64,000 nt of DNA from Iphione sp. A-MEVVRFRX5 (taxonomy: Eukaryota): positions 84,382,001 to 84,446,000 of the forward strand of contig OZ320315.1 of assembly GCA_976226885.1 (NCBI GenBank), written 5' to 3'. Shown piece by piece: positions 9,901 to 38,000 of this stretch. The notes beneath the pieces are model-generated. The model ran no database searches. It was not told the DNA's origin and worked only from the letters and a program-made list of their open reading frames with translations. Position 1 is the first letter of the stretch. Each line of letters starts with the position of its first letter. Made by a program: the position numbers and the translations under genes.

Positions 9901-11231
9901 TTACATCCCACGCCGTACACGAAGCATTCTAATGTACCGATTTGGATGTCCAAGCAAGATGGCCTCCCACGACAGACCAATCAGAGCATTCGGTTTGTGT
10001 CTGGTCTCATGGGCTAGCTTATCAACTAACAACTACAGAAACCCCTGGTGGTGCCTGTGTAAAACGTATCACCGTGCAGGGGATCCATTGACAACTTGTT
10101 TATCTTTATGGCTCGTTGGCGGGGCAGACTTGGCCGTACGTAGCGCAAGTCTCGCCGGGCCTCGCGTTACTTCGATCCACACGGAACTTCCGCCTACTTC
10201 GTCGGCATGCCCAGCCACAACGTTTCCGGTCCGTGGCAAAGCCTTTCAACCGACGTCATTGATTATGGAACCAAGTTCCATTCTGATGAAATATTTCTTA
10301 CGTGAACCGCAGGACACGGAGAATTGCTAACAAACGGAAATAGGCATCTTTCTAAGTGTGTGAGGATAGTGGGTAATACGCATCTATCTCTGCTTATGGC
10401 TATTTCGGGGTTACTCCCTATAAGTATGCGAATGTCTACATTTCAATTGCTCCTGTGTACCGGTTTCCCTGGTTCTTCCATCGTTTACCTCCAAGCTTTA
10501 TTATGATTGTATCTGAAATTACCGACTTGAGTACCAAAAGGAAAGAATTTAAATGCACATGTATTTGTCACAGGGGACCACTAAATGTATAAAAGAGGCC
10601 GGTGATATATATTCCTTAAAGGAGTGCCTAAATTGCCGTCCATAGGTATAGAGGGGCAGGGTTCTTACGTCAAGCAGTAGCAATTTAGCTTATAAAATAT
10701 TGAAAGCTTTATACTTTAAAGGATGGAAGTATAGCACGATAAAAGATGCCAACTACAACAGATAAATCACGGCAAAAAGCCTGGGCTGCACTTGACGGTT
10801 TTTCCTTCTAACATGTTCTTCCCTTTTTCTGAACAATGAACCAATAGTATATACATTGTATAGCAGAGAACTCAAATCATATAAGGAGTAAGAATAGCCA
10901 ACGGTCTTTTCATGCAGGAATCTTGACATTCTATGCTCACATCACCACCAGGACGTTTGCCTCCAAACGCAATGCTCCATTCCCGCCCATTCCTGGTTCC
11001 TTATCTGTATTGTTTTAAATTCTCGTTGGTGTCCTGGAAGATGATGACCAGGCGTCGTCATCCATAAAGTCTACACCATCGGCGTGTGACACGTTTATAG
11101 CCATAACGACCCTTCGTCCGGGCGGCGCAAGTCGTGGGGTTAATTGAGAAGCGAGCTGCGATACCCAACCTTAAAGGCGATGGCCAATCAATCGAGCGAG
11201 AGACGCGCAATGTAAATACACAGACCATCCC

Positions 11232-11270
11232 ATGGCGGAAGCAGGCGAGGCTAGCGAGGGCGGGGGCGAG
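11232..11270 (+). CDS. Candidate first coding exon of an antisense plus-strand transcript (MAEAGEASEGGGE)
   Basis: CpG-rich segment, CCAAT at 11184, cccATGG context, donor GAG|gtgaga at 11271. An alternative donor gtaagt lies at 11341. Confidence 0.25.
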
Positions 11271-11860
11271 GTGAGAGGAGATGGAGAGGGGGAAGGGGGA
11301 GATGCTAGCGGGGATCATGTTCTTGATCGGGCAATACCAAGTAAGTGATCGGCATGTGCTCTCGCGGGGAAAAAAGAAGGGTCGAACAGCGTTTTGCACT
11401 TCTCCTGTGAATGAAATACGGAGGTGCAGCGAGAAATGACAATGAAAGACATTTGCCGTTTTGTTCTTTTGTGCCAAGTCGCATTAATGTTGCAAACCCC
11501 TTTCACGTGTAACCTGAACAACATCAACGGTTTGGGATTTTTAACAACAAAAAATGAAATGTCCAAATTCTTTCAACAAATTATATTAATTAATCACTGG
11601 CCCTTTATTTGTTTCCAAAATACCACAAAATCAGTTGACAAAATGAAATAATTGGGCACCTAAGCATAAGCCACTGATTTCAAGAAAGACAAGGTAATGT
11701 TGTGGTAATGTCTTCTCTTGTTCACACTCCCTTGTTTTCATTTACGAATGGTGACTGTGCAAAATGATTGAAATTACAAGTCTGCTTCCAAGGCTTTGAC
11801 CAGATGACCCATCCTTCACCCCATTGTGACCTATGACCCAGCCACTGCGATAGGAAGGCT

Positions 11861-11877
11861 CTGTCACTAATCAATCA
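11861..11877 (-). promoter_or_regulatory. Pbx/Meis(TALE)-type composite site
   Basis: Minus strand reads TGATTGATTAGTGACAG, which is TGATTGAT plus TGACAG. Confidence 0.35.
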
Positions 11878-12407
11878 CATGGCGATCAATAGTAGTCTAT
11901 GATAGACTTCGTTCAGTCCCTTCAATATGGGTAACATTGTTACAAGGTAGCTCTGCGATGTCCTTCCAATTGCATTTTGTCATTGGACGAGCACCGTGTT
12001 AGAAACATGGATAAAGAATAAAGAACAAAATATATGTAGACTCAATGTAAAATGTTTTATAGCCAGCGGTTCTATTTGCAAGGCACTAAATTATACACAC
12101 TGCTATTACCATCAGACTAAAATGTATATACGCAGTTGTTTGTCAGGTATGTATGCAGACTACAGCATCCATTACACGTAAACCATCTCTCATAGTTACT
12201 ATGTAAGGTACCCATCAGTACAACAGTGAGAAAAAAACAAAGCACCCAGAAACGGCTAAAAAAAAGCTTACTTCGCTCTAAAGCTAAATTCTATGGAAAT
12301 TTTGCTGAATAGAACCATACGTATATAGACCGAACGACCGATGCAGAGAAATACAGCTACATTTTAAAAGTCTGTAAATTATTGAACTACATTATGTCAC
12401 AACCGAC

Positions 12408-13745
12408 CTGAACCTTTTTCTCCCACAGGAAGTCCACTCCTTTGACAAGGCCACAGCAGATGAGGTCCATGGCATGGTTGAGGTAAGCCTGCTCAGACCA
12501 AGCACCTGTGTGTCTCCAGTGAGTAGCTCCAGCAGCACCACTTCCACCTGTGCCTCCCCCTCTTGGATCTAAACTAGTCGGTTGACGACCACTGCCGCAT
12601 GCACCATCGTCGTCGCCGCCACCACCGCCACCGCCTTTGCCACTGCTGCTACTGCTGCTGCTGCTGATTCCAGCAAATGGCTGCTTGTTGTACATAAGGC
12701 AGAGTTCAGAGGTCATTGGAGGGTAGCAGGCCTCCATCAGCTGGGGGCTTCCGGCGCCTTCGACGCCACCCGCAGTCGAACCTAGCACGAGGTCAGACCC
12801 ACTGAGAATATTCTCAGCACCACAGAGAACTTGGCAAGGCTCGAGGAGGGCTTCCTCCTCCCGTAAGGCCTCCAGGGGGGTTTGCAGGATGCGAGCACGA
12901 TACATATCAGATAAAGCCAAGTGATGTGAATTAACCGAAGGGTCAGGCTCCTGAAAGCCGGACCCGCCCGCTTGAGGAGTTCGACAGGTGATGGGCAGAC
13001 TGGTGCTATCACAGTTACTGTGGTCGGCTGTGTGGGCAGCTTGTAAAACACTACTGTCCGCCAGGAGGACATCACTGTGGTAATTCCTGTGCCCCTCCGG
13101 CTGGTTTACCACGACAGTAGCCAGCGTTTTGTTACCCCGCCGTGGTCTCTTGTGAGACACTTTTACTCTCCTCTCAGATACCGACGTCTCCCCTACCGTA
13201 CCTTTGCCATGCGGATGCACCTGTGCGGTTGGGGGTAATTGATCCAAATGTTCTTCGAATACGCCCGAGTCTCTGAGGGTGGCAGTCAGGGCGGTGCCGC
13301 CTATGTCCACGTCACCGTCACGGTTCATTTCGTCCGGTTTCAGGAGAGCGACCGCCGAGTCCTTCATCCCTCGGTGGCCTTTCACTGTTCCCACGCTGCC
13401 CTCCTCGCCGAGGCCACCCCTGTCTCCCCTACCCTGGCCATCTAGAGCCCCTCCTGTTGGGGTTGCCCCAGGTGAACCCATCCTCTCGACCACGGTGTCG
13501 GCGCTCATCCATGCGTGCACCCCGTACAAGGAATCTGGGCGCGGGTCGCGGCCGGACGTCGTCAACGTGGAGCAGCTCCGGTCACCGTCAGTCACCAGTC
13601 GCTCGCTCTTTGCCGGGGCCCCAGCAATCGATGCGCCCGGCGGTGGTGGTGCTGGCTGTGGTTGCAGTGGTGGCGGCGGCTTTAGCGGGATAGCAATGCC
13701 AGCAGCGGTGGTAACCGTGTCTGGAGTGGCGGCATTCAACAACAG
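12408..13745 (-). CDS. Large low-complexity coding exon (about 445 codons) of an unidentified multi-exon gene
   Basis: By far the longest stop-free frame in the window (track ORF 12387..13742, 451 aa). It is Pro/Gly/Ser-rich with poly-S and poly-G codon runs. Probable donor CAG|gtcggt at 12408/12407 in phase 0. The 5' boundary is uncertain: weak acceptor aagcag| at 13746, first ATG at 13508. Confidence 0.75.
12429..12482 (+). CDS. Candidate 54-nt plus-strand exon (EVHSFDKATADEVHGMVE), antisense to the large exon
   Basis: Acceptor aacctttttctcccacag, donor GAG|gtaagc, open in phase 0-0. Confidence 0.35.
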
Positions 13746-14313
13746 CTGCTTAGCTTATACAGCCATTGTTAACAACTGCTGAATACGACTTACTCTGCCT
13801 CTCTTCCCCGCGACTCATTAGGCTCGGCGGGAGTGTTTTCAGCAGCAGGTGTGCTCTGTCCGATAGCCGTCCTCTACTGCTCTCCTCAACTTCTCATCTC
13901 GAATGGCTTAGTTTCTCACCAAACATTATCAACGGGGAAGTTTCTGGAAAGGCCTCTAGATTCGAATCCGCTTTCAGCCGAGCAAATCGTTGATTACACT
14001 GGGAATACCCGAAGGTGTGTCTGGTTACCAGTTGAGCTGCTCCAAAGTACCAGTGGCAGTGCCTCAGCCATGCAGAGGCGGCTTGTAGTCGTATATCCTT
14101 TTGGCAATCCTGGGCTCTTGCCGCTGCTGCCGGTGGCCAGGCCCACAAGGAAAGATACTGCCAGACATCTGACGAATAAGGTCCCGCAGTGTCATCGATG
14201 TCCTCATGTTGCGAATATTTGCGCGTGGCTGAACGGTCCGTTACGTCTACCTCTCTCTTACGGAGCTGCTCTTACCCCTTTGCCCCCTGATCTTGCCTTT
14301 TTCACTCTACCAG

Positions 14314-14543
14314 AACGGTGATTATCAAAACACCCGCTTTTCTATAGTGGATCCAAACAAACGCATACCATTGTACCAGGCATGCGGCGTCCAAACGCCA
14401 GCACACCGCCCTCCTACTTTCTGTGCAGCAGAGTGTGATGTGCGTGTGTGTCTGGAGGCGTCCCACCCTCCCCTGTACCTGTCCGGCGTGTGTGGACCTC
14501 GTAAAGCACGTTAGCAGCTAAGTGCGTCCCAGCCCAGACCCAG
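14314..14543 (+). CDS. Candidate plus-strand exon containing the stop of the antisense ORF
   Basis: Long pyrimidine tract ending tcttgcctttttcactctaccag. The phase-0 frame is open for 66 codons to TAG at 14512-14514. Donor CAG|gtgagg at 14544. Confidence 0.3.
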
Positions 14544-16839
14544 GTGAGGGTTCAGGGCGTGTGTCTGTGTGTGTGTGGAGACGGGGCGAGAGGCGGGTAA
14601 CAGTACATTTGTATGATCCACGCCCATAAATAACAAGACGGAGGATGCAGAGGGGGACGTGTAGTTGGGTGGCGACGGTGGAAGGGGGGGGGGGGTAAAG
14701 GGTTACCACTACCAGTCCCAGGCGACTGTGATCACTCGGATCCTATAGGCTGTGTCCATGCCGACGCTAACCAGTTCTACTATAAACGATAAACCTTGTT
14801 CTATCCCGCATACAATTCGTGCTCTAATGCCTTAATCCCTAACTGTCACGGAGAAATCAAGGGAGCCATTTCCTCCTATTTCCATCTACTACTTGCACAT
14901 ACCAGACACTGGAGTATCAATACATCTGCTCCTCCAGGTACATCCATACCGGGATGCCATTGCATTGATGTCAATTAAAAGTACCTGCCATGCCATGTAT
15001 TTCTGCCGATGGTATCATGACCGATATACATATAACATCTTGAGAAAAGGCCACCCAGCCTTGACTACACCACCCTCAATGATTTATGTATGCCTCCGTG
15101 TTGCGTTTTTTCGTTGTTGTTGTGCCTGTTACGTCTGGACTAGCCACCAAAAAGGCGAAACCTTCAGGCAAAGGGCTGGGATTATCGTCAGGTAATTATT
15201 TTGCTATCAAGTACCAAATTATTTCAGAATACTTACAACTTATATTGTCTGTGTAGTCAAAAAGATAAATAAACAAGGCGCTTTTTGGTTCCACTCTAAT
15301 ATACCTCGGGCATTTACTCTTGACGCATGTTTCCTCACGGAATAGATAAGTCACGGGTATTGGCCTATTTCCTGGGTATTTTAAGTCGTTGAAGATATTG
15401 TAAGATTTTTTTCCACTTCAATATACATAATAGTGTAAGTAATGATTGAGCAAATACATGCCAAATGTCCGTTCGTCAAAAATGAATGATAAACACTTTC
15501 ATCCACAATGTCCTCTATTGAAGTTAAATTATTTCTATATTCATATCAAGACTATCCATCTCCATAATGTTTCCTGTTACTTCAGAATCTATTAAAGGTG
15601 CATCACGAGACTAGGCATGTCGAACTGAAAACACGGGTAAGCCCTCACGGAATGGGAAATAGGACCGATGTTTTTTTTCTCAAATGAGTAAAGGGAAACC
15701 TGTTACGTGGTCAGCTTCGTGTCCTTAATATGTTAGTATTCCCATGGGAAAATTATGTGCTTCTAGTCTATGTAAATGTTTCTGGTTTTGAACTTGAAAC
15801 ACGTGTCTAAGTCTCAGGAGTTACTGTTATGATTAAATGCTGATTCCCATCTGTAGGCGATGCTTTATCTGTCAAGCTGTCAAAACTAGTTACCACATCG
15901 TGCACATAATAATCCAAAATTGGTTTTCTGAAATGCCCAATCAAATGATTTCACCATCATTGGATGTGTTTAATTAAGTTGGGCTTCAGGGTAGAACCGT
16001 TAGAACCTGTCGACCTTAGTGCAAACCGTTTGGGGCTGGTAATATCGTTTTTCACTGTCAGGGCCCGAAATTAATTTCCGAAAACAATAAGTAGCTTGGA
16101 AACGGTACTTTCTGAAGAATCGCACAGCGCAACATTGCACAATAAGAAGAGAAAATGGCTTAAAACAACAAGAGGAAGAGAGAGACACTGGGAAAAGAAA
16201 ACGGAGGTGAACAGCACATATGTGGCACAAAAGTACAAATCAACATGTTGCACTTAGATGTATGTGCATTTACATTTGCGAATAGGTATACCTTCATCCC
16301 TCTAAAGCTCCAAAGGCTTTGGTTTGTATTTATTTCAAGAGGAGTGTGACATGCATGTCAATGTGACATTTTAATAGATTAATTTAGTATACTCCTCCCA
16401 CCATGCACCGCTATCTCAAACTGCATTCGTATACACATGGGTAGGCATACGTGCATATACATTCACATAAGCTACATTTATGCATGCAACCAATATTTGC
16501 CTGTAATTCTTTGCTAGTAGAAGAACAAGAGTACTACGTGGCATAAACAGTCTGGGATTGGCCTACGCACCAGGAAAACGTGTTTATATACATCTACTGG
16601 CCCTCACTAAACATCTATTATTGATGGCATCCAGTTAAAAAGCGGACTTCCTACCTCGTTTTTACGAGGCTCTCCTCGGAACTACAATCTCATTTGGCAT
16701 GTAATTCCGGTCAAGGACTTCACTTGCCTCTCGTACTAACAGTGTTCTTTCATTCACTACTGCATATGCCACGTTATGACAAATCTTGATCGTCTTGGTG
16801 ATGATAGAATTGTAGCATCTTTTCCCAAAAAAAACTTAC

Positions 16840-17050
16840 CATGCAGTTTTTCTTTTTAGCAAATTTCGAAAGTGAGAGCTGTAAAATTGCGATCTGGGGA
16901 GGGGAAGGGAATGGCGACGACACTGTCACAATCTCAAGCCACACATACCCGGTGTCCATTCATATATGCCTCGCTTTCGGCACCAGGCGATACCATGGCA
17001 CCGGGATGAAATACACGGCCACCTCTCCGGGGACCGATGATGGTGGCCAC
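16840..17050 (-). other. Candidate alternative first exon ending in ATG|GTAAGT
   Basis: ATG at 16842-16840 is followed directly by a perfect donor gtaagt, downstream of a motif-rich GC segment. The 5' end is approximate. Confidence 0.35.
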
Positions 17051-17057
17051 GCTCTCT

Positions 17058-17082
17058 GTTGCCATGGAGAGGTCACGTGACC
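17058..17082. promoter_or_regulatory. Adjacent RFX X-box and palindromic E-box (USF/MiT type)
   Basis: GTTGCCATGGAGA directly followed by GGTCACGTGACC. Confidence 0.5.
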
Positions 17083-19538
17083 TCGTAGGATCTCCGACGA
17101 AGAGCACCACTGCCTTCTTGGAGGTAGCCCATGGGCGGTGAGAAGGGAGCGAAGAAACGGGTGGGAAGGGGGGAGGGGGCTGCGTTCCGTGTTCCGCACT
17201 ATGTTATATTATGTCAAGTAGCGGATCTTAGCTCTCTTGATCTCGAATGTTCCGGCAAACCGACTCCTTTCTCGGATGTGATCCCCACTCATGGAGGCGG
17301 ATGTAGAGCCACTACTTCGATATTATACCACCACATCGCAAATGGGGAAGCGGCCATGGATAAGATGACTGGCAGGCAGCCCGGCGGCAGGTGGGACGTC
17401 AGATATAGCGTGCTAGACACATAAGATAAGCATGACAGTAGGTTGTCGTTCACGCGCAAAACCACACACGTCTCTGCAGCAGGCATTAGCAGTCAAACGA
17501 CCAGGCTGGGATCTACAAAGAGGTTCCCTGTGGGAAGCTATGCCTCAGGAGTATAATTAAAGAGGATATCCATCAGTGCATTGTGTCAAAACCACACATC
17601 CTCCAGTCTAATCTGGGCTATTAGGCGTTGTCTGAATAGTCATTGGAGTCCCCTGACCGAGTTAGTCGTAGTAAACGTGGCTCCGGGGATGGTGTACAAT
17701 ATGGAGCAGAGCAATATATTGCATTAATAAGAGCACAATAAAAAAAAAACAAAACTACTGTCAAGTGGAGAACAATATACACACATATTTTGGACACGTG
17801 GCTATGAAACAGGAAAGCCTTAACCTGCAGGGCTGTCCTTTCTTAAACCATTTAACTTTCGATTGTTACAATCTTTAATTCCATTTCGCTCTTTTAAATG
17901 TTTAAAAGTAAGCGACACTGTTCAATATACCCAGTAATTACAGTAAACGTAACGTCTGCACTCTGTGCAGTATATTTACAAACCCATATATATGTACTCT
18001 ACTCTAAGATCAATGTGTGTTCTTCACCTGGTTCATCATTTTATAATCAGATACAATTCAGTACGTATTGCAGGAGAATAATTCCCATAAATACATGTAA
18101 TAGGACCTATATGCTTAGACCGACAACCACGCAGTTAATTATCTAGACGACGTATAATCCATCTTGTGTGATTTGGATTAAATCCTGCTGGACGCTGAGT
18201 TCCAAACAAAAAAACATCCTGTGATTCAGACGAGAGAAATTCGTATTAGGCCCGCGGGTATGCGGCCCGGACGGTGAGTCCCGGGTCAGTCCAATAGGCT
18301 TCCATATGCAAAAACCAAATCATTGGCCCATCCGTTTTTTGTGAATGGCAGACTGTAAAACAATTAGCATGCTATTTGCATATTGATAACGTCGTGTACC
18401 TAACCACAAGAGATGAGAATCTGCACGTGTGTCTTTACTATGACAAGATGTTTATGTAGATGCTTCCATTTGTTTTATGGCAACATACGCTACGGTACTT
18501 AAATTCGGACTTGCTCCATCACTACTTAAATGGAGGTTTTTGCAGTGACTATCAATATATATCTACTTTTGACGTGCTTTCAAATCGCAAGGTCATTATT
18601 CTATGCAAAGCGCAAATAAATGAAAAAGAATCGGAAGTTTTGCAGACAGACAAAACAAGTTCATGTAACATTACTTTCATCAACGACATAATTCATTCTA
18701 TGCCTGATGCCTTATGCCTGAAAGTAGCACAAAGAATCCAATTATATTATACCTAAACATTTACTGGTTGTTCTTTCCCACACTTTTGCGGTGGTTCAGA
18801 AATTAGACTCAGCCTAATTGCTATTTTTGGGCCCATATTTTAAGTTCGGATTCAAGTAAATGGCGCCAAAAAGCTAGCCGTTCGTAATTTTCCAAGGAAA
18901 AAAGGGGTTAGATTCAATATGCATCCTGGCCTAATTGCGTAATGACTGTAATTATTTCGTAAGCCAACGCTTCACGGTAGTAGGTATTTATGCATTCTGG
19001 GTGATTTTATGGGCTGTTACTTGGGCAGCTAATGTCAGACAAGTTCGTACCGTCCCAGAGGCACCCCGCATCAGAGGCAGAAATGTCCCCGCCTAACCAG
19101 AAACGATGTTCATCAATCGACTGCAATGTTGGGTTAATCCCTGTCCTTAATCCCCTAGCCTGATGAATCAGACAGGCCGGGGATCGGCCTGGGTCTGGCT
19201 AGATCCCCGATGAGGCCCCCATCGCTGTCTGGGATGCAGACTATTCGCCGCATCCTAGCCTCTCTCCTAACCTCCTCAACCTCATTCGACCCCTTAACCC
19301 CAACAAAGAAACAGAGGTCTGGTTGTATGCGTGTCAGCAAATGTCCCTTACAAATATAGGGGAGGGATAGAAGATAGATAGCCCGTCTGCAATACATCGG
19401 ATACGACCGACCCTTGTGGACCATAGGGATATGCAACTACCCTGACAAGAAATAGAGTGATACAACAGGGACAGAAAACATTTAAGTAACGAACATCAAA
19501 AGATGGCATTTTTACAAATATTACATTTTCTCCCTTAC

Positions 19539-19556
19539 CATAAAGGGTTTCTTGTT
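19539..19556 (-). CDS. Candidate 18-nt frame-preserving microexon (E-QETLY-G)
   Basis: Acceptor ctctcttcaaaatttgtcag, donor TG|gtaagg. Open in phase 1-1. Confidence 0.3.
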
Positions 19557-22500
19557 CTGACAAATTTTGAAGAGAGTACATTCTTCAACAGTCACCAAAT
19601 AGTTTCTACTGAATAGCTTACCCGTGGGAAAGCAACAAAAGGAAAACTTTATCTAATAGCATCCGTATATTAAAAAAAAGTATCGAAACCTTGTCCCAAA
19701 CTGATAAGCATCGCAGCATTCTGACGTGTGATGCGAAGCTTCAAATGTCCAGAATCAATTAGCCCGGCACAGTGACGATCTGCTGGCGTGCCTGTCCACC
19801 ATTAAGACAAGGCATCATTTCGAAGTTATCCACATGCAGACGACATTTAATTTACATGAATCATAACCGTAAAGAATGGGGTGGATGTTTCATTGAAGGG
19901 TGAGTTGTTTGTAGAGCTTTTCTCCTGGGAATATGACAATTACCGGCAGCTTCTACACCATAAGGGCGCCTTAAGCACTTCAGTATGGTGTGGGGAGCCT
20001 TCGTCGAGAAGGGGAGGGAAAATGCGACAAGGGATTATGAATATGCAGCTAATTACCCCTCTCTTCCTGCTTTGATATTCAAGCATTATTTTCTCAGCTT
20101 CATGAGGTCATTCAAGAAGGAATTGCCATGAAGCTAGCCTGCAGCGACATCACCTTCTAATCGCGTGAAACCAGCATCTCCATTTGTTCATTTTTGAGTA
20201 TGAGATATGCTACTTGTTCATGCATGCATACAATATGGCAGCGAAGGTTCGACTATCTGTTGTCGCGTAAGGAAAAAGGGGATCATACTAAGGACCTATA
20301 CATTCGATGACAAAGAACAGTTTATCGAATAACAGCATGAGCAATTCATCATGGAGCATACGTATAGTTTTACGTCTGAGTCGATAAAGAACTGTGACGT
20401 TGCTGTTACCCTACTTTATTGAAGTTCAGCTCTTGGATTGGACCCGGAGTCTCCACTGAATGTTTTATGAATATATCTCCTACAATTGACCAACTTGTGC
20501 GTCTTTGCATGGCTGTCCTTCTCTTAAGGAGCATTTAGATTTGGCCCGGATCCATGTCACTCAATGTCGGGTTGGCCAGTAAGTGTATCTGGGCCATGGG
20601 TGTGAGTGTTGGCTGAGCAGCTCAAGGTCTGCAGACTAATTGAAGTAGAGCGGGCCTTAAATTGGCCAATTACAGGGCCTGCTCCGAACTCGAGATGATT
20701 CCGGAGGGCAGCGATCTATGCATTGATCCTCTGTATCCCATCGGATTCTTAAGTCTGTGGACGATGCATTCAACCAGCACAAGGCCTGGATCTATTTGCA
20801 TTAAGATCCACCCCCACCCCCGTCCCCACTTTCCCCCTTAACTCTAACCCCGCATGGCCGATGGCTGTTATAAAGTTCCCTGCATCCTTCGACGAACCCC
20901 AATATCTGGCTATCCCTGTAAAAAGACAGCTAGGAAAATAAAGAGACATCCTAATTATATGAGAATACCTCCAGGCATTACAAGTGTAATTGATTTCAAT
21001 TAGGACATATTTTCCGATCGGCAAACGGAAAAACGGATGGGAAACGAATTTAATAAATCATGGACGAGACCATGCTGCCGCCTCCCACACCGTCTTGATA
21101 CGGGTCGCTATCGGGCGCGTTAGGGCCACGGCCATGCAGAGGCCTCCTGCATTTTTCTTCATTGGCCTTGGGCATTGATGAATCATCAGATGCATTTGTG
21201 GCCGTGGCGCCATTAACTTGGCATTGGATCGGCTGGGCAGGAGGGGGTTCCCATCTACTCCAATAACTGCCGGCGGAATTCCTGCAGGGCACTGTTGGGG
21301 CGCCTGGTTTGAAACTGAACAGAGCTAATTTAAGGCGAACGTCTGGATACGATGAAGCCGAGCTGGACTTGCTGCCCCATCGGCCCTGCTAGACTGAGCA
21401 TGGTACGTCGACATTCGCCAAAGTCGTTCAATATCAATTTCAGATATTTGTTGCCGCCATTGGTCACTCATTTTCGACCCCCATCAAGACCAGCCAGACA
21501 GGGGGGGTGCGGGGTAATGTGAAGAATACAACGAGCCAGCCAATAAAGACAGCTAAATGGCTACTTGGAAGATCTTTCTCATGGACAGGAGATTGGATAA
21601 GGAAGGGGAATGGAATGAAAGCCAGGGGGCTTCTGGCTTTGGTCCGAGCCCTTTTCCTCTGTAATTGCCTCATCATAGCAGTGTGCCTTGTGTATGTATC
21701 TAAGGCCAGTGGAGTGACCAGCGGCTACCTCGCCAACTTCTGCACGCTGACAATACTGCTGATTGGGTACTTTTCTTACAGGTCGAAATGGAAGGCTGCC
21801 AATCTGTTTAGATCCTCATTCCATGACTAGAGACCTACCGCTGTAATAGATAAGTGATTAGCCTTGAGATAATACTTTGACATTTCTATCAAGTTTTTCC
21901 CCTCCAAGAATATGCACCTGAACGACAGACCTGTCTGTCCTCCTTCCAGCATCTCAAAGGGGCCTCCATCGCAAAACTCACATCTAATCTCCTTTGAAGT
22001 TCATTGAATGACTTAAGGGAATATGCGCGTTTTTCCCCGCCTATCTTCATGTACAACTGTGACATGTTGCCGTAGTGTATATTCATCTCCTGAAGCCAGT
22101 TTGGCTTCCGATGTGGCTTCCCCCGCCGCCTTCTCTTTACAGGTGTGTCGCTGCCAAACAACGCCATCAAACATTTTCTATGTGTCCTACACACGCAACC
22201 GTTCTGTGAATCATACCCAGTCGGGAGGCTGGGACCCTTAGTGATGAGAATAAAAAAAACAAACCGCGCCATCGTAGCAGATATGGCGTGCGCAGAATGT
22301 CCTTATTATTAAGAAGTTTATGGCTCGCGTCCTTGGCACAAACAATTTGGCCACACAGGGGGATTCCTTATCTCCAACGCATGCTGTCAGAACAATGTAA
22401 ATATGAGTAAATAAAAGATGGTGCTGGGGCGTGAAATACTGCAGAGACTCCCTCAGGGGGAAGTGCAGGATATGCAGAGCAGATCACTTCTCACCAGAGC

Positions 22501-22806
22501 TACGGGACTGTTCTTCCAGTACATGTATTAGTTCTCATTAGGAAGGAGCTGTTTGTTGTCTAATACGTTACATATGTTGAGGATTCAGATGATGAATTCA
22601 CTAGTCCTTTTACTTGTATAGTCGGACTGAAGGCAATGATTATATAGCAAATGCAACTTTATAACGGCAGCTACATACATGCTGTATCAAGCAATTTATT
22701 GCGCGTGGAACAAACATCCGGAGAGAATTAAATAGTCAGTTATTCCTATACGTTGTAAAGAACGTTATTGAAATCAGAGTTAAATCTATTCCAGATACTG
22801 GCTTAC

Positions 22807-22867
22807 CTGTTGAAGAGACTTGTACCCTGTGGATGTTTCTCGCAACAAGCATAAGGATCGAACTTAC
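22807..22867 (-). CDS. 61-nt exon beginning with a 5' splice-site sequence (RS-exon-like; KFDPYACCEKHPQGTSLFN)
   Basis: ttctctttctcgttttag|GTAAGTT...TTCAACAG|gtaagc. Two of three frames are open. Confidence 0.55.
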
Positions 22868-24132
22868 CTAAAACGAGAAAGAGAACATATTCAAGTTGCT
22901 GCAATAGGCGTACTTTGAAAATAGTGTTATAGTTGGGAGTGATGCTGAATTATGTTTGCTAGAGAGTGTGCATACGTACATCTATCCATACAATGTAGTT
23001 TAAACACATTTAACATTTAAACATGCAACATATTATAAATGTGCCAACGGACATCGTATTCGGTTTTCACTTTGATATATGGAGGACGATATATAATGGC
23101 TGTGTGGGAAAACCCTAAACCCATACTTCACAATTTGCTTTCCAAGTGCCTTTTGGTAAAGGTAAATAGTCGTCGGCGTTTCAAAATGCCAAGTAAAGGC
23201 GAAACTGGAATACTCGAGTGAAGGGGGCTGTTGTTCCAGCTGTGACCTGGTACACTACTCTGGTTGCCTGACCGACCGAGTTACCCGTGCCAAGGATATG
23301 TCTCTACTAATAGGCGGTTTCTTTGATTTCCGAGTTTAATTACAAAAACATGTCAGGTTAATTTGTTCGGTAAACAAACCGGACACGAGTTCATTATAAG
23401 AGTGCAAACTAATACACTGAGAACGTGAAAACCTCTCAGAAAGCGACAGGCAAACGAGCACAGGTTACTTCCATTTACAATCTGCCCCGAAATTCTCATG
23501 CACCTCCTCATTTACTCTCACACAGGATAAAGCACAGCAGCAAAGAGAGGAGTGACTCATTCTCATACTCGTTGCCGCCTGGAACCTGAAACATACAAAT
23601 ACATTGTACATGTATATGTGCACAATAGGTGCACCATTAATACATTATGTATAATCCTGTAGCGTTCTGTCCCGTAGGACAGAACAATGAAGTCCATGCA
23701 AAGTGAACTATTATCATGATTCATTTGTTCTATAGGGTGAGGTTACATTGAACGGACCACTCTGAGAAGGATAAAGGTAGGTTCAAAACACAAGATACGT
23801 TGCTGCATGTTTTGCGCAGGGTTGCAACGACGGTTCGTGTGTCCACCGGCAGACTGCGCCTCGGGCGAAGCTGGGCGGAAGGATTCACCAAGCGATCTCT
23901 AAACCGTCAGGCAGCTGTCGGAGGCTTCCTTCCTGTCTCCTCTGGCCATTAAACTTCTAGAGGTTGCCAGATCAAAGCGGAATAGCCTTTCGGGCATGAA
24001 TAGATAATTAGGTCAAGGCCGCACTTTGGAGATGGAAGGATAGTGGCCGGACCACAGTGGACACCAAGGTGAAATGAAGGTCACTCAATATCGCCTATTG
24101 TCTCGGGCCAGCCATAAGTTCCTTTGTCATAG

Positions 24133-24162
24133 TCCTTCAATGATGTCGTTCTACTCCAAAAG
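24133..24162 (+). other. Candidate 30-nt plus-strand exon (SFNDVVLLQK)
   Basis: Acceptor ttcctttgtcatag, donor AAG|gtaagt, open in phase 0-0. No partner exon established. Confidence 0.25.
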
Positions 24163-24832
24163 GTAAGTTTTCAGTCTTTAAATGGAGCACTTGCAAGTGA
24201 TTTGGAAGGACCCGTTTTTCCCTCTCAAATTGAAGAATGCGAATCTGCCTTTTTGACCTTCGGTGAAGGTCAAGAGTGAACTGATCAAAAGATGTCTCAT
24301 GTTCGAGCCGGGGATGCCGTTTCTTCTATCTCCATCCTGCATAATTTGACCTCTCCTTCATCAAAGCATCAAACATTACCGCTAATGAGAACTATCAATA
24401 ACTGAAGGAGGTCAACATGCTAAACAAGCCATCACGTGGGCAACGTTACTTTTGCATCAGCATGGTACATAGTTTAATGCTGTGTTGTTTGGGAGAGAAG
24501 GCTCCCTCGTGATGGTGCATTTTCAAAGTGTACATTTACAAAACTCCTCCCTTACTGAAACATCGAGGCACGAATGGGCCACAAACAATGGACTTCAATC
24601 TTACAAATCTCCACCATGAAATGTGATCTCAAAGTTCCATGCCCTTTTGAGCTTTATCGGTGTTACCGGATAGGATGTCTAAACAAAAGATCAGTCGGCA
24701 ACGTTCCGCTAAACCAAGGGTACTCTATTTGTTCAATTATCGGCTTGATACAATATAACCGGCATGTTGCTCATAGTTAACACGGTTCTCGCGCAATATC
24801 ACCCGATTATTCGTCAAAATTAATCACCTTAC

Positions 24833-24839
24833 CGAAAGG
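24833..24839 (-). CDS. Candidate 7-nt microexon CCTTTCG
   Basis: Very strong tract tttgttctctctgttctcttttcag, then 7 nt, then donor gtaagg. Confidence 0.5.
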
Positions 24840-25987
24840 CTGAAAAGAGAACAGAGAGAACAAATACGCCGAGATTAAAACTGTTTCTTGTACCGAACAT
24901 CAAAACCTAGGGTCGGTGGGATTTCACTTTTCCTTTCTTTGGGTCAGTGATTAAAGACATTTTTGAGTCGGCGGGAGGGGCATTGCTCTAGCTGTCCATG
25001 CCCATCAGGGAGTATACATACATGAGTATATCCCTTGGAGGAGATGGTGGGCCTCTCGAGGGCCGAGTCATAACGTTCCCCACTCGATGGCGGTTACGCT
25101 AACACCATTTATAGAGCAGCGCCGGTCCATTTGGAGAAGCAATAAGGACGATGTTTCTAGTGTGTTCTGTTGCACAAGGCGCACGGCCGTGTGTTTGTCC
25201 ACATGCTGGGGCCGGCCTTGTCGCACCTGGCAGCCCCCTGACTGGCTTCTGGCGTGAGAGGCGCTCGTTTGGGTCTTGAGGTGAACGTCAGGAGTGCTGC
25301 TAAAGTGCGGGAGGGCGGCAGGAAGACATTCAGGGGGATTGATTTTTTTTCCTTGGCGGTGTGGTGGTGTTGGGGTTGGGTGAGTTGCTGGTTCCAGAAT
25401 CAGTAGCATAAAAGTAAAAATGGTAAGTACCACTTGTGTTTCCGAGTGTTATGTCTAGACGCAGATGTGGAGACGTGCAGACTCTGAACAACACAGGACG
25501 ATGTTTCCAGACGTTCAAATACAGTTTAAAAGAGAGTAAAGAAGCGTCATTCGCATACCTTCAATCACAAAAAATTTTTGAGGATCCTACTGTAATGTAA
25601 AGACAAAGCGTCGGGTTTTTGAAGCCTTAAGAACCACCTTTCGATCGTCTTCGGCCGTCACTGATTTCCCACGTAACTATGACGTCGCCATGACAACGGC
25701 ACCGTTCCTCATGGACCTCATCAGTGGCCATGTATGGCCAAGTCAGAAAAATGTCTGTCTTTTTTTTGTCATGTAGGAGGGTGCAGGGCGGGGGGGTCAG
25801 TCTCCCGAATCCGACATGTTCATAGCGTGACGTCACGACACGTCATTTTACGTCGACACAAGGCAGGCCTCTTTCATTGAGCGATCCTCTGAAAGAAGCT
25901 GGTTTTCTTTCGGCCGGCGGCAGATGAGCTAAACTCATTAGTACCATTTACCTGGCGCACAATGGCGCCCAGTAACGAAAGGCTAAT

Positions 25988-26001
25988 CACCAGATGGCGC
26001 T
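25988..26001 (+). promoter_or_regulatory. CTCF-like motif
   Basis: CACCAGATGGCGCT matches the CTCF core CCACYAGRKGGCR. Confidence 0.4.
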
Positions 26002-28116
26002 CCGGTCATAAAGGCGCCAGCGAAGACGACGACCAGAGAGACAGTAAAAAGTAGAACGTCAATCACCACTTCCGTATCCTGCGTGTTTCAGCCATGCTAT
26101 TTTTTTCCTATGCGGTGTGACTTTTTACGTACACAAATAAACGTCAAATTCCTTATTACCCCAGTTTCCGCCATTGAAAAGGTCACACGCCCTAAGGATA
26201 AATAAGGGGGCATAGTGTTGCCCCTGGATGTATAACCGAGGAGGCCATGTCAATTAGATTCCAGTTTATATTTGCTTACATATACAAATATTTTTAAGAT
26301 GTGATGCATTTAGTCCATGGCAGTATGCCGTTTTCTATTAGTTTTATGCTTGTAGGGGGATTTCACGGAAATCATCGAGAGCAGATATGTGCAATAAACT
26401 CGAAGACTTATAGAGTCATGCATTCATGTAGATGAAGAATTTCAAAGTGTACGTTCCGTCCTGCAAGTTCATATAAACTTTATCGCAATATCATCCATTT
26501 TTGACATGGAACTGACAACTAGATGTGTGCATCGTGAGAGCCTTCTGGGAAGTTACGGTCTCTATCAAAACATAGTATCATTCATAACCGTTCACTTTGG
26601 GAGGCGTGTTACTATCTAAGCTCAGACGACATTGCTCGCAGCTCATGTAGCACGCCACATATATTTCTAAACGGTTTTAAGTACATCTGTTAGCCGACTG
26701 GGCGTCTGCTGGTTTCAATGTTAAGTCTGAAGTCATGGGTTTCTGATAACCCACAAAATACGCGTCTAATACCCAACAACAACATGGAAGGGCTTATTAA
26801 AAGCGTTGAGGTTGTCGGTAAATATGGAGATGACTACACAGACACGACCGATGAGTCGAACTGTTTTCACTTAACGTAACCCAGGCAGCAGCATTGTCGG
26901 CACTGGAGTATTTGATCGGATTAAAGGTGGCCCGACGGCCATGATGGATGCCCGCCACAATGGGCGCTGATGAAAAAGTAATGTCCGATGTGAGCAATAG
27001 ATGGCGTAGCGGCACGAAGCACGTCAGCCGACGACAGGAGCGCGGCCCGTAACGAAGTCGCTGATTTAGTGGCAAATCTCACGCAGCGGACGGCCATGGC
27101 GGTCAGCGGGCCAGCGGGAGAATGTGAGGACCTGTTACAACGACGTGTCAACGTTCAGACCATTGTCGTTCACACACTGACTACTTCACGTAACAAACAA
27201 CTCCATCTTTCGGGACTGCCATCTATCTCGGGCTAACATTCTTTCCCACGACTTCCGAGTACATGTACTTATTGATCCACGGAGGCTCGTGTGTATAATA
27301 TAGGAAGTACATGTAATTGGTAACAATTGTTGTAACGTAGGGAGAGAATATGTCGTGAAGCACTTTGATAAGTCGTGTTTCAATGAAATTCAAACTTTCG
27401 GTAGAACCTTTTCTCGCAGCATGCGTGAATGTTGCTTTCCTTTAAATAAATACAACTTCCCTCCGAGAAAAAGATCCTTTCATCAAACAATTAACTGACA
27501 AAAGAAAAATATCATCTGCCTTTTGAACCGAACGGTGTTAGGGAACAGTTGTGTCCAGACAGCTGTAGTCCAGACAGTTAGTCACGAGAATAAAATATAT
27601 CTTAATCAGATGTTCTTAAGTAGGCAAAGTTTAAGTGACCTGGAAGTGAACTGGTCTACTACGCAGCCTCATTATAACGTCCCAAGTTGTAATTGGTACA
27701 TTGGTCACACCCTGCAGGGCATTTTGAACAGACTCGGCTGGCACTGAGCCCAGCTTTCTGGCTGCCTGCCAGGCTAAAATGTCACAATGTCGAGAAGGAC
27801 GGTTGACCATCATACCCAGCATTCTACCCGCTATTTACTTAGCGCTCTACATCATCTCACCACACGGCTACACACGCGAACAATGTATAATGGCGGTAAC
27901 CGTATAGTGATATCCATGCTTTGTGTTTCTGTGATGTATATATTCCTTTAGCTACTATGTATCGTCCAAACTATCTCATGATCATCTAGATACACATGAC
28001 GTAATCTAAATTCGATTCTAAGTTGTCCACTCTTCAGAATGTAATTGTAGTCAAGGCGACGAGCAGGCAACAGACACGCATTTTCGAGACAAATCAAAGA
28101 CGTTGAGAGCTTGCAA

Positions 28117-28165
28117 CCCCCCCCCCCAAAAAAAAAAAAAAAATAAATAAATAAATAAATAAATA
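28117..28165 (+). repeat. Poly-C, poly-A and (AAAT)n simple repeat
   Basis: Read directly: a C run, then an A run, then AAAT units. Confidence 0.85.
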
Positions 28166-31100
28166 GTTGTGTCTCCTTCGTGAACACTGCAAACATAATT
28201 TCCTGCCTCATACGACAGCGACATCACCAAAATGAATTTAGGCATCAGACACACGGTCCAAAAGTATACCATATGTAACGCAGGGACATATGTGTCGTTT
28301 ACTTTGAAGAAACAATTGAGGAGCGGTTCATGATATTGTTTAGGACAGTTTACAAACATGTAAATTGCCACGGTTACTTTAAGGCACTGTGAGTGCCTCA
28401 CAGCATGGTCTAGCTAAACTCCCTAACCACAACAATGTGAGTCATGTTATACTATATGGGGGTTCGCTTATAGCTTTCATATATCTGTATACATAGAATG
28501 TGTTCAGCACGAGATTAACGAGGAGAAATCGTTCTGAAGACAAGAGGGTTTTTGACTGAAGAGTGAAGTTCGAATCTAATCAAAGCCTAAAAGAAAAAAC
28601 AGAACTCAGAGCGACTGTGTACACGCTAACTGTCTTAAAGTTTATGGACTGATTTTCATGGGAAAGGATGCACACCTATCTTAGACAATGCATTCCCAAG
28701 GAAAACACGCAGCACATCCCCTATATTAGGGAACCTGTTAGAGAGTACACGCGTATGTTACACGCATGCCGATATTTTGAAAGTGTCCCAGTCTAAAATA
28801 ACAGGTATGCACAAATCCTTCTCCATTGCCTAATGCTAATTATAGAGGCGTTATTGCCACTCGCACAGTTCAGTCTACAACCACGCCTTGCCATACGTGC
28901 GGTATGACTCACATGAAACCCACACGTGACATACTGGCAGTGTATCACATCCCACCTCCAACACCGCTTCCAACTTTTTTTAGGCGAGGGGCGCCGGCGA
29001 CGTACCTTATTGTCTCCTGCAGGAGTCGATGTGCATTCTCCTCTCACTGACTCCTGACGGGTGGCTGGTAAAGGCAGCAGCAGCTTCCAAGCGACAGTTT
29101 CAGCCATCAGAGATCTCCAGAAGTCCTCTGGGTGTTCCTCCACCAGAGTATCCTACGCTTGGAAAGAGTCTTTCGGGAGGGGGGGGGGCGGCTGACAATA
29201 GCAGATGGACGTTGATGGAAGAGAATCGAATGGACCGCAAAATGTTTACATTTATGGTCCAATATCAGTTTTAGTCGCGTGTGCAACACGTGACTTTTGA
29301 TGAAGTTTCAATCTGATTTAACACTCCACCAGAAGCAGCCAAGTTCCTAGTCGGAGGAGGGGGTACCGGTATGCGTGTCCTCTATTGCATCGAAATATAT
29401 CTGAACAAGAAGAATGGTCCTGATATCTGTTTCGTGCCCATTTGGATAATAATAACGGTATGCTGTGTGTTTCGTGCGTAGGTTGAGCGTCACATGCGCC
29501 GGTTTTCTGAACCGCCTGGGATGTAAACAGCGCGGCTTGGTAAAGAGTAAACTACGCCGAGCCCGGCGATCCGTGTAGCATTCAATCAGATGGCAAGAGC
29601 GTGTGGTCAGATCGCGGGTCCCACAGGGCTGTCCGCGCGCCGCTTGATCACAGAGCGGCCGGGTTGTGTTAGATAACTTGCAGTCGGGCCTCCTCTTTGC
29701 GAGCTGCTCGCCTCGGGGCGCCGGGCGACGACGACGGCAGAGTGCCTTTGTCTGAGCGACTCAGCTCGCACGAGGCGACCTGCGCTCTGGAGCTGTAATG
29801 AGATTGACTGAGGAAATCACAGCAGAGGTAGAGCTTCCGCGTATTAATGGGTCATGCAGTATGTGACAAAATGAGGCAAAATGGGAGAAAAAAAATATGA
29901 GAAAGAACACGCAAAGAATGCCAGCCTGTGATCAACTTTCCAAGGGAAGCACAGATAGGAGAAGCTAGAAACAAAGGACCACAGGACCCTTGTGCGAGGT
30001 TGTCAGAAATAGTTGCCACCGCGGGCTCTTCGCGCCACAGACCTTACCAGCCGCACATGCGGTTCATGATGAACACTCATGCCTGTACTGCTCACAAATG
30101 CGCGTCCTCATTCGCCGAGCTGCTCGAGAGGCAAGCGACCTGTAATGGGACAGATCAGCAATGCCCCAGGCTTTAATGATAACTACTTGCGGGATGCTGC
30201 TCCTCCCATCTGCAAACCACCTCCGTCGCCCTCCCCCAGCCCTCACCCTCCTTCCAAAACATGATCCTGCACCTCAAGCTTTCTTCATGAAGAACAGCCC
30301 CTTTCCTCCTGCAACCCCCGTATGATTGTGTCAAACAGCCTCAATCAATCCCTCCGATACTTTAACTCGTTGTTGTCTGCCCCATTCCCACCATTATGGG
30401 GAATCACGGTAACTGCTCCAAAAAATGAATAAGACACGTTACAAATGGGGCCCATTGAGCACACCACAGCAACGGCAGCGGAACATTTCCAGCCGCGTCG
30501 GATATAAAACTCTTTAAGAAGCCCCAATGACGAGCAGCCGAACGGTGCGACGTGTGGAGATCAATATAGTTCGATCGCTCAAGGCTTCCTTAAAGACAAG
30601 CTTCGGCTAGAGTCATTAGCCAGGTTGGCAACGGTGGCGGGCAGTGGGGCCGGCGGTTGGGATTCGGAGGGGGAGGAAGGGAGGTGGGGGGAGGGGAATG
30701 AGCTTGGGGCATTGGAAACGGTATGGCCTTGAGGTGGTGAATCACAGGTCTTCCGGCCACTGCCGATACAAACCATACCCCGTGATCATTCTATCGCGCT
30801 CATCCGCCGACATCAGCGAGGTCCTGATCCCCTCACAAAGGCAGAACCCACTCATCCACAGCCCCAGGTCAGCCACCAGTACATTTCTGCCACAAAGGCA
30901 TCGGCGGTCGTAAGAAATGGGGCCAATGAATGTCTCCTCGAACCTAACCGAGCGTTATTTATGTCGGCTAATATAGACTGCGCGGGAAGGGGAGGCCCCG
31001 ACATAAATTTTCTAGCTTGTTGGGACGACGGAAATATTGTAATTCGGTTGTACCACGAACGAACGATATACTCCACTGAATAAAAGTTAAATTACGACCA

Positions 31101-34100
31101 ACAAATTCTCGCCCTACGTGTCATCTACTTCAACGGTCTAAAAGGGTTTATAAAGACCGGTCAATAGTTGCAATTGCAAAGTAGTATGTACAATGTCCGT
31201 GAGAATGCTTACACTCTCCCCCCATGCAATCAAGCTTGTTTCGTTCTTTACACCTTTTCTCTTTCCCGAATGACATATAACCCATCGTTAGGTTTGCAGC
31301 TCGTGAAGGTCCCAAGAATACTTTATATGGAGGAAACGTACACGTAAGAAACTGTTGCCGAACGAGGTCTGTCGCCTTGAAATGAAGAGCGATTGCACTG
31401 TCTCTGAGCCACATCGAGTATACGAGTAGACCCAGTAACCACTGCACATGACCTGCCTTCCTGATGCCAACTCCAACCTTTTCTCTCAATGCTGATGGGT
31501 ATATACATGTATATAGTACCACGCGAGTTATTCCAAACAGTCTACAATATATTGTATGTAAAGTTTGAAAGGGTCGCAAACAAGGAGAAATGACTCTTTA
31601 CCTCTAAGATGTGTTTTCGTTTTTTTATTCGTGACAGCCTCTCAAAGTGAGACTTTCTAATCAAGCACATACTGTGCACTCCCTCCGTCAAAAAAAAGAG
31701 GTTTGGGCTTGGACTTGCACCAGGAACTAAGACAGGAATTAGGCGCTCCTCTATACCCAATGTCTTGAGGGATCGTCAATCCACGAGGCGTCAGAGCTAG
31801 TTGCCTTTGTCCGGCATGCGGTTTACCAGCCTCCCATTTGCAGGCTTTCCGCCCCTGGGTGCTGGCGCCACCACAATCCCATCAGGAAATCCGCAACTTT
31901 CAGTGTTTGCACTATTTGCTGTTCGGCCGACGTGCCACCTGTCCGTTCCGTTGGCCCCGGCCGTCTTTTATCTCCCACTTCCTATCCTGCCTTTCCCGTT
32001 TCGGTGTCCCACGAGTCAGGCTTTTCCCTTTTATCTACTTCCCAGGTCTGTCTCTAGCTTTCTCTCTCTCCGCATTCTCCATCACAGTTGCGGGGGTCTC
32101 CTGCGCCCCGCGTTTCCTCTTGGTCGAATTATCTATCCCAGCCCTGCTCTCCGCCAGGGCGCGCCAGCCTCGGCGAATAGGGGGATACACGCCCCCTTCT
32201 TCTTGGGGGGCGCCACAACCGCCACGATCTGGTTAGAACAGCTGATGAAAAATCAGCCCTGCTGACTAATATTGAGGCCGCCCTACTTCACAGCCCGGTC
32301 GCTGCTAAACTCATCAAGGCCAATATGTAAGCCTAATGGGAGGCAAACTGCCAGGACTAGAACGAATGCATTGTTACACCATATGGAGAACAGGTAAATT
32401 GAAAAATACTGAAAATAATAGGTACATGCCCCTTTCAGCGCTTATATAATCCACTTTCATTGCCCTGGTTCTATTCGCTGCTCCTACCTATGCCCTTACT
32501 CGACCTTTCTGACTCCGCTGTTGTTTCTTATAATGTTACCATGGATATTAGTACTCCACCTTCACTACAGTCAACAGTCCATGTGTGCTTACCATAGAAC
32601 TTGTCATAATTCAACCCTCCCATCCTCCCCCCCCCCCCCCTGTATTACGCCCGGAATCAGCTCAGGGAGGCTGACTTGCTTGTTGTTTAATACTGGCCGG
32701 TTTCATCTGCCTTACATGTTGCGAAAAGGCCACAAGTCAACGGATGGAGGATTGGGATCAGAGGCGGCACGTGCCTCGCTCTTCGTCTGCTGTGCAGCAA
32801 AGTCAAGGTAGTCATGCGGCCGCGGAACGTGGTGCCATTTTCCTTTTTGCCGGCTCCGTTTTGCTCGAGATTACGGCGAACTAATGGGCAAGCCATTGCC
32901 GTCGTGCCACGTGCTGTTGGGACCATCAAGAGCGTGGAGGAGGAGCGGGCGCCACTAGATGAAAAGGGCGAAGTTCTAAAAAAAGCAGATCACTTCCAAT
33001 GTGAACCATGGCCTGCAAAAGATCATACGGATCCGGTAACAAAGAGGAACGCTTTGAATTAAATACAGCCATGCCTCTTGTGCTGGGTGATTATAGAGCT
33101 AGCGCCCACCTCCAGGTTGTAGCTTAGACTCTCCTTGCGGCAGTAGGGGCCAATATGAGTCGCATCCATCTCATCTCTACCGTGAACATTACAGAGGGAG
33201 TACAGTTCCTGAAAGCATGTGCGTGCTGATCCGTTCCCCATGTTAGTTTGCAGCAGCCTGCAGCCTGTGTCTCCTGTAATCGACACAACGATGAGATGAT
33301 GGTATAGCGACGCTTCTCCGTGTGGGTAAATACAGGAGGCAGGCCCTGACATTATGGAGTCATAGTCAACAGTCAGAGGATGCCAGTTATCATCTATAGT
33401 CGCCGGCTTTGGTATGACTGTCTTGACAAAACGGAAAATGCAGTGTTATACAGAATATGTCTATAGTTGTTCCAATGTAATGATATGAAGTGACATTTCT
33501 TCGAGCAGAACTCAGAACATCCATACTTATTATATCTGTTACAACATGTTATTAGTTCACATGCAGATACAAATACAATTATTTCCGTGCCTCATGAAGG
33601 TTTCGCAGATCCAAAACAAAAGGTTATAACTCAAACATTTTTGACCTTTGTTTAATAAAAAATACGCAGTTTTCATGTAGCATCATCATTTACGTGCAAT
33701 AGCCATCTGCGTGTAACAATGCAGAAAATGGCTGTAACTGGCTCTCCTGGGAATCTATGTGATTTACACCAATGTGCTCATCACTATACCATGCTAAGGA
33801 AGGCGACAAGTAGGCGACAGCTCCCTTCTCTTCAACTCATGGGTGATTATCTCCCCCTCTCTCCACCGAAGAAGCTGAGAAAATGAAAGACAAAGGTGTG
33901 GAAGTGTAGTTGGACCACTCTCCCTCATTCAGCGAAAAAGAATAGGTCGAAGGAAACTATAGGAGGTGTACGTAAATTGTATTGACTGTAAATACAATAA
34001 AGATAGAACAATATTATAAATCAAATTGTCCTTTTACTTCAAGATAACTGGACAGAAGTTCTAACTCCCTAACGCCGTTTAGTCCATAGAAACAATTGTT

Positions 34101-34618
34101 CTTGATGGATTTTGGTCAGGGGACTAATTCGCAAATAACATTTGAACGGGAGAACATAATTGACTTGCAAAAATCAAAATGATGGGTGCTTGACGACTCG
34201 ATTCACAACTTTGATATGGAAATGCTATTGAAATACAGACAGAAATGACTTGTAAATGCTATCTAAATATAAAGTCATAAGTAAAAAAGGAATTTTGAGC
34301 TAAAATATATACAAAATGGTTGTCAAATCCAATATGGGGGTTTTCTGTTTTCATGTCACCAAAACCGGAAAAAGACCACATGACTCAAAATAACTCAGAT
34401 CCTTTCTTATGCTCTCATATGATCTTCATCCTATCCAATGAAATGCTTCTGCTCAAACTTCAAAAGGTATCCGAAAAACCAACATGGCAGTCCTAGACAG
34501 CATTTGTAGCGAAAACTGAACAAGATGCTAGATATTTTGGTAGGATTTCACTCTTTTCCCTTAACTGTCATTGCCAGTGTTTAATTATGGATTCTCACTT
34601 TTGGTGCTGTAGTCTTAC

Positions 34619-34632
34619 CATGTCGCCCAAGC
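34619..34632 (-). CDS. Candidate 14-nt microexon (G-LGDM)
   Basis: Acceptor ccattttctccctcgacctccag, exon GCTTGGGCGACATG, donor gtaaga. Confidence 0.4.
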
Positions 34633-37600: not shown

Positions 37601-37923
37601 TATACTTGCTCAAAAGGGGAATTTTATAGGTTTACTACAAATCCTACAATATGAATTGTATTCTTTGTACATAATTGTGGAGATTGCGTCAAGCACAGAT
37701 TCTGATTACATAATGAAAATAATACAAAACTGAATTATCTGAAACGTATCCCACACATGATGAAACGCCTTTTTCCACTTACAATTCCAAAACGTCCGGG
37801 GGGAAGAAACAGATGTACGTAGGCTAGTTCCCTGGTCGAAGCCACTGATCCCCAGGGACCAAGGCGAGTAAGTACCGATTATCATTGGATGACCACGGCT
37901 AGGTTTGATGGGCGCTATCTCAC

Positions 37924-38000
37924 CTTTGGAGGAGATAGAGGAGGAATGACCTCGGTAGCCGAGGAGGACCAAACACGTGCCCGCGTCCAGTCGGCCTCAT
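37924..38000 (-). CDS. Candidate alternative first coding exon in a CpG island (MRPTGRGHVFGPPRLPRSFLLYLLQ)
   Basis: Very GC/CpG-rich 37.9-38.25 kb, gccgcATGA context, donor AAG|gtgaga in phase 2. This phase does not fit the microexon chain. Confidence 0.2.

Follow-up and report, generated by a model that had tools for sequence, protein, structure and literature searches.

A putative recursive splice site with a 61-nt cryptic RS-exon in a PDZRN3/4-like gene: one of at least five predicted within a single 224-kb intron

The 64,000-nt stretch of DNA analysed here, which we call the window and to which all coordinates refer unless another contig is named, is entirely intronic with respect to the gene that contains it. 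For the mapping of this host gene, 100 kb were added on each side of the window and the resulting 264-kb stretch was compared by tblastn with PDZRN3-like orthologues. A minus-strand ORF in the left flank encodes the second half of a PDZ domain, and an exhaustive protein search carried out with this ORF led to proteins composed of a RING domain, a Sina/TRAF zinc finger and two PDZ domains, named PDZRN3-like or PDZRN4-like and found in Branchiostoma, Glandiceps, a stingray and others; a Haliotis PDZRN3-like protein was recovered in a later search. Three exons of the first PDZ domain (PDZ1) are colinear on the minus strand, at about +157.8 kb, +138.5 kb and -85.7 kb relative to the window (Table 1). 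Judged from these three exons and from the best named matches, the host appears to be a PDZRN3/4-like gene for a RING E3 ligase of the LNX type. For the PDZ exon, as well as for an alternative first exon of seven codons described below, the best match is from Haliotis.

The giant intron splits the first PDZ domain in phase 0, between ...DDQILK and VNGQDL..., and the upstream exon terminates in AAG (...CTTAAG). At this place the orthologues of Haliotis (IIKVNGQDL), Branchiostoma and Glandiceps are contiguous over ILK/VNGQDL and carry no insertion (here and below, a slash marks a splice junction). In B. floridae, an intron of 56 kb occupies the same position and is the longest of its gene.

Several other features were observed within the intron and elsewhere in the genome. 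A short alternative first exon (L015:8389-8409, minus strand; window-relative -21591..-21611) reads ATG GAT TTC ATC ATC CTC AAA/gtaagtctc and encodes MDFIILK. In three Haliotis species, the annotated PDZRN3-like isoforms that are short and lack the RING begin with MDFMILK/VNGQDL, and the conservation of this first exon makes an internal promoter near -21.4 kb likely. On the sense strand of the intron, between sites 22867 and -9198, lies an ORF of 455 codons (12390-13754, minus strand), far beyond chance length, located in a stretch of 53% G+C and rich in S, G, P, A and T. It is single-copy in the genome, and no Pfam family, no homologue in a word search and no relative in the Atlas were found for it; it may represent a gene nested in the intron or an exon restricted to the lineage. 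Pfam searches with the ten longest ORFs of the window gave no match, and an Rfam scan of the whole window gave none either. An intronless Hsp70 gene is present at L026:1417-3339 (minus strand; G000:C15), with best matches that are 76-81% identical, the named ones coming mostly from molluscs, nemerteans, annelids and a brachiopod. The genome is accordingly lophotrochozoan-like, probably that of a mollusc or a near relative and not of a lancelet, and the protein collection searched holds no close relative of it.

Table 1. Exons of the host gene and composite splice sites in the giant intron, in minus-strand order (window-relative coordinates; contig positions in brackets)
Feature	Position	Strand	Sequence and remarks
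Start-of-PDZ1 exon	~+157.8 kb	minus	located by tblastn
Middle-of-PDZ1 exon (5' exon of the giant intron)	ends +138451	minus	...GATCAAATTCTTAAG/gtgagtaagc; CTTAAG/gtgagt
Window	1..64000	minus	wholly internal to one 224,164-nt phase-0 intron of the PDZRN3/4-like gene
Sibling composite site	49552..49641	minus	tctgtcatatttgtcttttcag/GTAAGTTGC; cttttcag/GTAAGT; GT at 49619; 62-nt RS-exon with in-frame stop; GAT/gtaagt at 49557
Acceptor half of the composite site	22868..22889	minus	22-nt tatgttctctttctcgttttag; 17 of the 20 bases before AG are pyrimidines; ends TAG; AG = 22869-22868
Ratchet-point donor GTAAGT	22862..22867	minus	abuts AG directly; GT = 22867-22866; 9/9 consensus AAG/GTAAGT after joining to ...CTTAAG
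Cryptic RS-exon, 61 nt	22807..22867	minus	open in frames 1 and 3
RS-exon donor CAG/gtaagc	22801..22806	minus	8/9 consensus; context CAACAG/gtaagcc; last exon base 22807
Sibling composite site	-9198 (L016:802)	minus	ctttcag/GTGAGT; decoy exon of 45 nt, open and frame-preserving; inclusion would add 15 residues to PDZ1
Sibling composite site	-41505 (L014:8495)	minus	ccttgcag/GTGAGT; without a good downstream donor
Sibling composite site	-59244 (L004:756)	minus	atttcag/GTGAGT
End-of-PDZ1 exon (3' exon of the giant intron)	starts -85714	minus	cttcgttgtgctacag/GTGAATGGCCAGG; ctacag/GTGAAT

The initial annotation had described, in this part of the window, a 3' splice site followed directly by GTAAGT and, 61 nt further on, by a second donor; both the coordinates and the motifs proved to be correct, on the minus strand. 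Read on that strand, the sequence at 22868/22867 is tatgttctctttctcgttttag/GTAAGTTCG (also written tatgttctctttctcgttttag/GTAAGTTCGATCC). No nucleotide separates the 3' splice site from the 5' splice site (ttctctttctcgttttag/GTAAGT), 17 of the 20 bases upstream are pyrimidines, and the RS-exon is closed by CAG/gtaagc at +61. The 701 bases around 22867 are single-copy in the 1.18-Gb genome. Taken alone, the bare nine-mer YAGGTAAGT at 22867 is within chance: it occurs twice in the window versus 0.8 expected, and two or more copies appeared in 19 of 100 shuffles; when GTRAGT is allowed (YAGGTRAGT), there are again two in the window versus 1.8 expected. The composite sites in their context, however, are far beyond chance.

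Strict composite sites, defined as YAG/GTRAGT preceded by at least 16 pyrimidines in 20 bases, were sought on both strands of the whole 224-kb intron. Five were found on the sense strand (49619, 22867, -9198, -41505 and -59244); the antisense strand gave none and holds one near-miss with 15 pyrimidines in 20. The random expectation is 0.027 sites per intron, and the maximum in 300 dinucleotide-matched simulations was two. The sites lie at intervals of 18-32 kb, and at four of the five a donor that agrees with the consensus in at least 7 of 9 positions is found 45-62 nt downstream (61 nt at 22867; 62, 45 and 56 nt at siblings); the chance of such a donor is 0.055 per random anchor, which gives P = 4.4e-5 for four in five. 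As the five sites have in common only the pyrimidine tract and the YAG/GTRAG core, and share nothing past these, they are not copies of a repeat. Inclusion would cause a premature stop for three of the four RS-exons, the exception being the 45-nt exon at -9198. Sites -41505 and -59244 are downstream of the MDFIILK exon and, judging from this order, would serve long and short transcripts alike. Downstream of the 5' exon, only weak candidates were seen over 88.8 kb, until the first strong site (49619) is reached; two weaker composite candidates on the minus strand, ctctgttgcag/GTGAGA at +92398 (L018) and cttcttttgaag/GTACGT at +71216 (L017), may be additional, less canonical recursive sites. The architecture of a recursive site with an RS-exon, as originally proposed for 22867, is thus present in its full anatomy, on the sense strand of a 224-kb intron, with four sibling sites and an upstream exon that ends in AAG.

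Throughout the genome, the strict pattern YYYYYYYYNYAGGTRAGT was found 426 times versus 328 for the reversed control, that is, 1.3-fold. Among the 100 pattern places listed, 24 pairs of same-strand neighbours are less than 200 kb apart versus one pair on opposite strands. Same-strand clusters of the strict pyrimidine-tract YAG/GTRAGT, with the sites within 75-300 kb, were observed in this genome (G000) at C1:129248029-129548885 (plus strand, six sites), C1:132867922-132983829 (plus, four), C2:11388703-11519461 (minus, three) and C2:19098182-19171139 (minus, three); judged by sequence pattern, they resemble additional ladders within giant introns elsewhere. In Branchiostoma floridae, the orthologous 56-kb intron contained no composite site under identical thresholds. 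Two related contigs, L022 and L023, align in the 3' exon only, the ~1.5 kb of sequence upstream being unalignable, and neither of them extends to any composite site; the transcript contig L025 aligns in the exon only, with a 5' end for which the intron offered no match.

We then considered whether the 61 nt could be translated, since the initial annotation had taken them for a required in-frame member of a microexon chain, read in frame 3, which is open and gives KFDPYACCEKHPQGTSLFN. The host intron is in phase 0 and therefore the host frame is frame 1, not frame 3. Read in that host frame, the 61 nt give VSSILMLVARNIHRVQVSST; their inclusion shifts the frame by +1, and in a local translation of the joined exons a TGA is reached 11 codons into the next exon. 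Residues that are neighbours in a single PDZ domain are encoded on either side of the intron, which leaves no place for an extra peptide in the PDZRN3-like protein, and the orthologues read across the junction contiguously, as described above. The peptide of the 61-nt exon found only itself, and no paralogue, in a six-frame search of the whole 1.18-Gb genome, and the sibling RS-exons, with 56, 45 and 62 nt, have no common phase. The region 5098-38800 contains 307 candidate microexons of 7-70 nt on the minus strand and 295 on the plus strand, counted when their splice signals were no worse than those of the 18-nt exon in the proposed chain, and the mean in dinucleotide-matched random sequence is 301. 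With about 300 candidates per strand and as many in random sequence, a phase-consistent chain is to be expected by chance, and the 7-nt and 18-nt exons that had been proposed alongside the 61 nt are left without support. Seen from the structure of the host gene, the 61 nt are a non-coding decoy exon, out of frame and outside the protein, and this structure refutes the claim of a required coding exon.

From these results, 22867 appears likely to act as an intronic recursive splice site, or ratchet point, that carries a cryptic RS-exon of 61 nt and belongs to a series of at least five in the 224-kb phase-0 intron that splits PDZ1. We consider it very probable that the site is a splice element kept by selection, and probable that the intron is taken out in steps. 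That splicing passes through the five composite sites is a well-supported prediction, drawn from what the analysis shows, namely the anatomy of the sites, the host gene, the phase of the intron, the statistics and the consequences for the reading frame.

The mechanism that we propose is modelled on fly and vertebrate recursive splicing. The short RS-exon, with its acceptor at 22868 and its donor at 22806, would be recognised via exon definition, and the upstream exon, or the previous recursive product, which would always end in ...CTTAAG, would be spliced to the AG at 22868. The intermediate junction would be ...ATTCTTAAG joined to GTAAGTTCGATCC, where AAG/GTAAGT is rebuilt; since the upstream exon ends in AAG, each recursive step would in the same way rebuild AAG/GTRAGT, a donor with 9/9 consensus. 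The rebuilt donor would then remove the next segment, of about 32 kb, to the site at -9198, and the 61 nt would leave with this segment and never reach the mRNA. If instead the downstream donor CAG/gtaagc wins, the 61 nt would be included, with a frameshift and a premature stop, and the product would presumably be a target of nonsense-mediated decay (NMD).

The competition between the two donors that the initial annotation suggested is reasonable, as they are near-equal in predicted U1 pairing: the ratchet-point donor, regenerated by joining ...CTTAAG to the site, has a predicted U1 duplex of -10.6 kcal/mol versus -11.0 kcal/mol for the RS-exon donor. The coding exon that had been offered as one outcome of this competition is contradicted by the structure of the host gene. 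As the RS-exon donor at 22867 is not weaker than its ratchet-point rival, complete skipping is not guaranteed; some leakage into a 61-nt poison exon is plausible, and 22867 could give the long isoform with the RING a tunable NMD switch.

Two strong splice sites, with a downstream donor as strong as the ratchet-point donor, would also be expected of a conventional regulated cassette that involves no recursion, either a poison (NMD-inducing) exon of the long isoform or a non-coding 5'-UTR exon of transcripts begun at alternative promoters within the intron, whose opening GTAAGT is donor-like by accident. Alternative first exons do occur within the intron, as the MDFIILK/gtaagt exon at -21.6 kb and its match to the MDFMILK start of the Haliotis short isoforms indicate, and in both Haliotis and Branchiostoma the VNG exon is joined in several isoforms with a shortened N terminus. 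However, that a GTRAGT should open five separate exons of one intron by accident is very unlikely, and in flies the same architecture is always skipped by means of the ratchet-point donor (PMC8605326). We therefore consider a conventional cassette unlikely.

Still less probable, and in our view very unlikely, is a chance co-occurrence of splice-like motifs in non-functional intronic DNA. The chance level of the bare YAGGTAAGT in the window, the genome-wide pattern at merely 1.3 times its reversed control and the antisense near-miss would all agree with chance; they are set against the five strict sites on the sense strand versus 0.027 expected, the donors 45-62 nt downstream at four of the five (P = 4.4e-5) and a genome-wide clustering that is consistent in strand. 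A required, translated exon of 61 nt, with the choice of donor toggling between a coding exon and zero-length recursion, is barely conceivable: frame 3 is open, and translated RS-exons exist in flies (Ubx m1 and m2, 51 nt each; PMC8605326) as annotated RS-exons do in mammals (PMC6224609), but here the exon falls inside a phase-0 intron between adjacent PDZ residues that are contiguous in three orthologues, has a length that is not a multiple of three and a stop in the host frame, encodes a peptide without a paralogue in 1.18 Gb, shares no phase with the exons of its siblings and stands among some 300 comparable microexon candidates per strand of the same span and as many in random sequence.

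The predicted recursive site with its cryptic RS-exon follows most closely the configuration of the Drosophila ratchet points. These lie in long introns, with acceptor and donor juxtaposed, and the short cryptic exon behind them (about 50 nt) is in most cases out of frame, is little conserved and is kept out by competition between donors (PMC8605326). As in Ubx, kuz and Bx (Hatton 1998; Duff 2015; Joseph 2018/2021; Pai 2018; PMC8605326, PMC6110457), a pyrimidine tract and YAG are fused to GTRAGT, and the very long intron contains several such sites on its sense strand; a second donor closes a cryptic exon of similar size, which is out of frame and gives no indication of being coding, and the competition of donors is expected to decide between skipping and inclusion. 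Unlike the fly cases, the host of 22867 is a lophotrochozoan-like animal and the gene is PDZRN3-like, the site is predicted from sequence, and the donor of the RS-exon is at least as strong as that of the ratchet point.

In vertebrates, recursive splicing with RS-exons in long neuronal genes is said to have been described by Sibley et al. in 2015 (cited in PMC8605326). The vertebrate RS-exons share with the predicted site an exon-definition model and a premature stop upon inclusion of the RS-exon (Blazquez et al. 2018; PMC6224609), as well as a long host gene with intronic alternative promoters, which in vertebrates decide the inclusion of the RS-exon. However, only about nine fully suppressed intronic recursive sites are firmly documented in mammals (PMC8605326), whereas five are predicted here in one intron, which is closer to the fly pattern. 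Expressed RS-exons, such as the translated m1 and m2 of Ubx (51 nt) and the annotated RS-exons repressed by the EJC, also open with a donor-like GTAAGT and provide a precedent for the idea of dual use. In contrast to the 61-nt exon, they preserve the frame, are conserved and are found in the protein; the 61 nt are not a multiple of three, shift the frame to a stop in the host frame and are absent from all the orthologous proteins examined, those of Haliotis, Branchiostoma and Glandiceps.

The negative part of this work is of some general use, since chance alone produces phase-consistent chains of microexons when raw sequence is read, and the mapping of host-gene exons with orthologues settles claims of this kind quickly. 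On the positive side, the five predicted sites supply a concrete set of junctions to be sought in total RNA. To our knowledge, experimental demonstrations of recursive splicing are limited to Drosophila and a few vertebrate genes, and the papers searched contained no report of it for molluscs or bivalves, nor for PDZRN genes. It is somewhat more likely than not that giant introns of a lophotrochozoan (mollusc-like) genome regularly carry ladders of fly-type ratchet points with cryptic RS-exons. A 224-kb intron with five evenly spaced and strand-consistent predicted sites offers a clean, testable case in a third major animal lineage, and, if the prediction holds true, recursive splicing would be a general bilaterian solution for long introns and not a speciality of flies and vertebrates.
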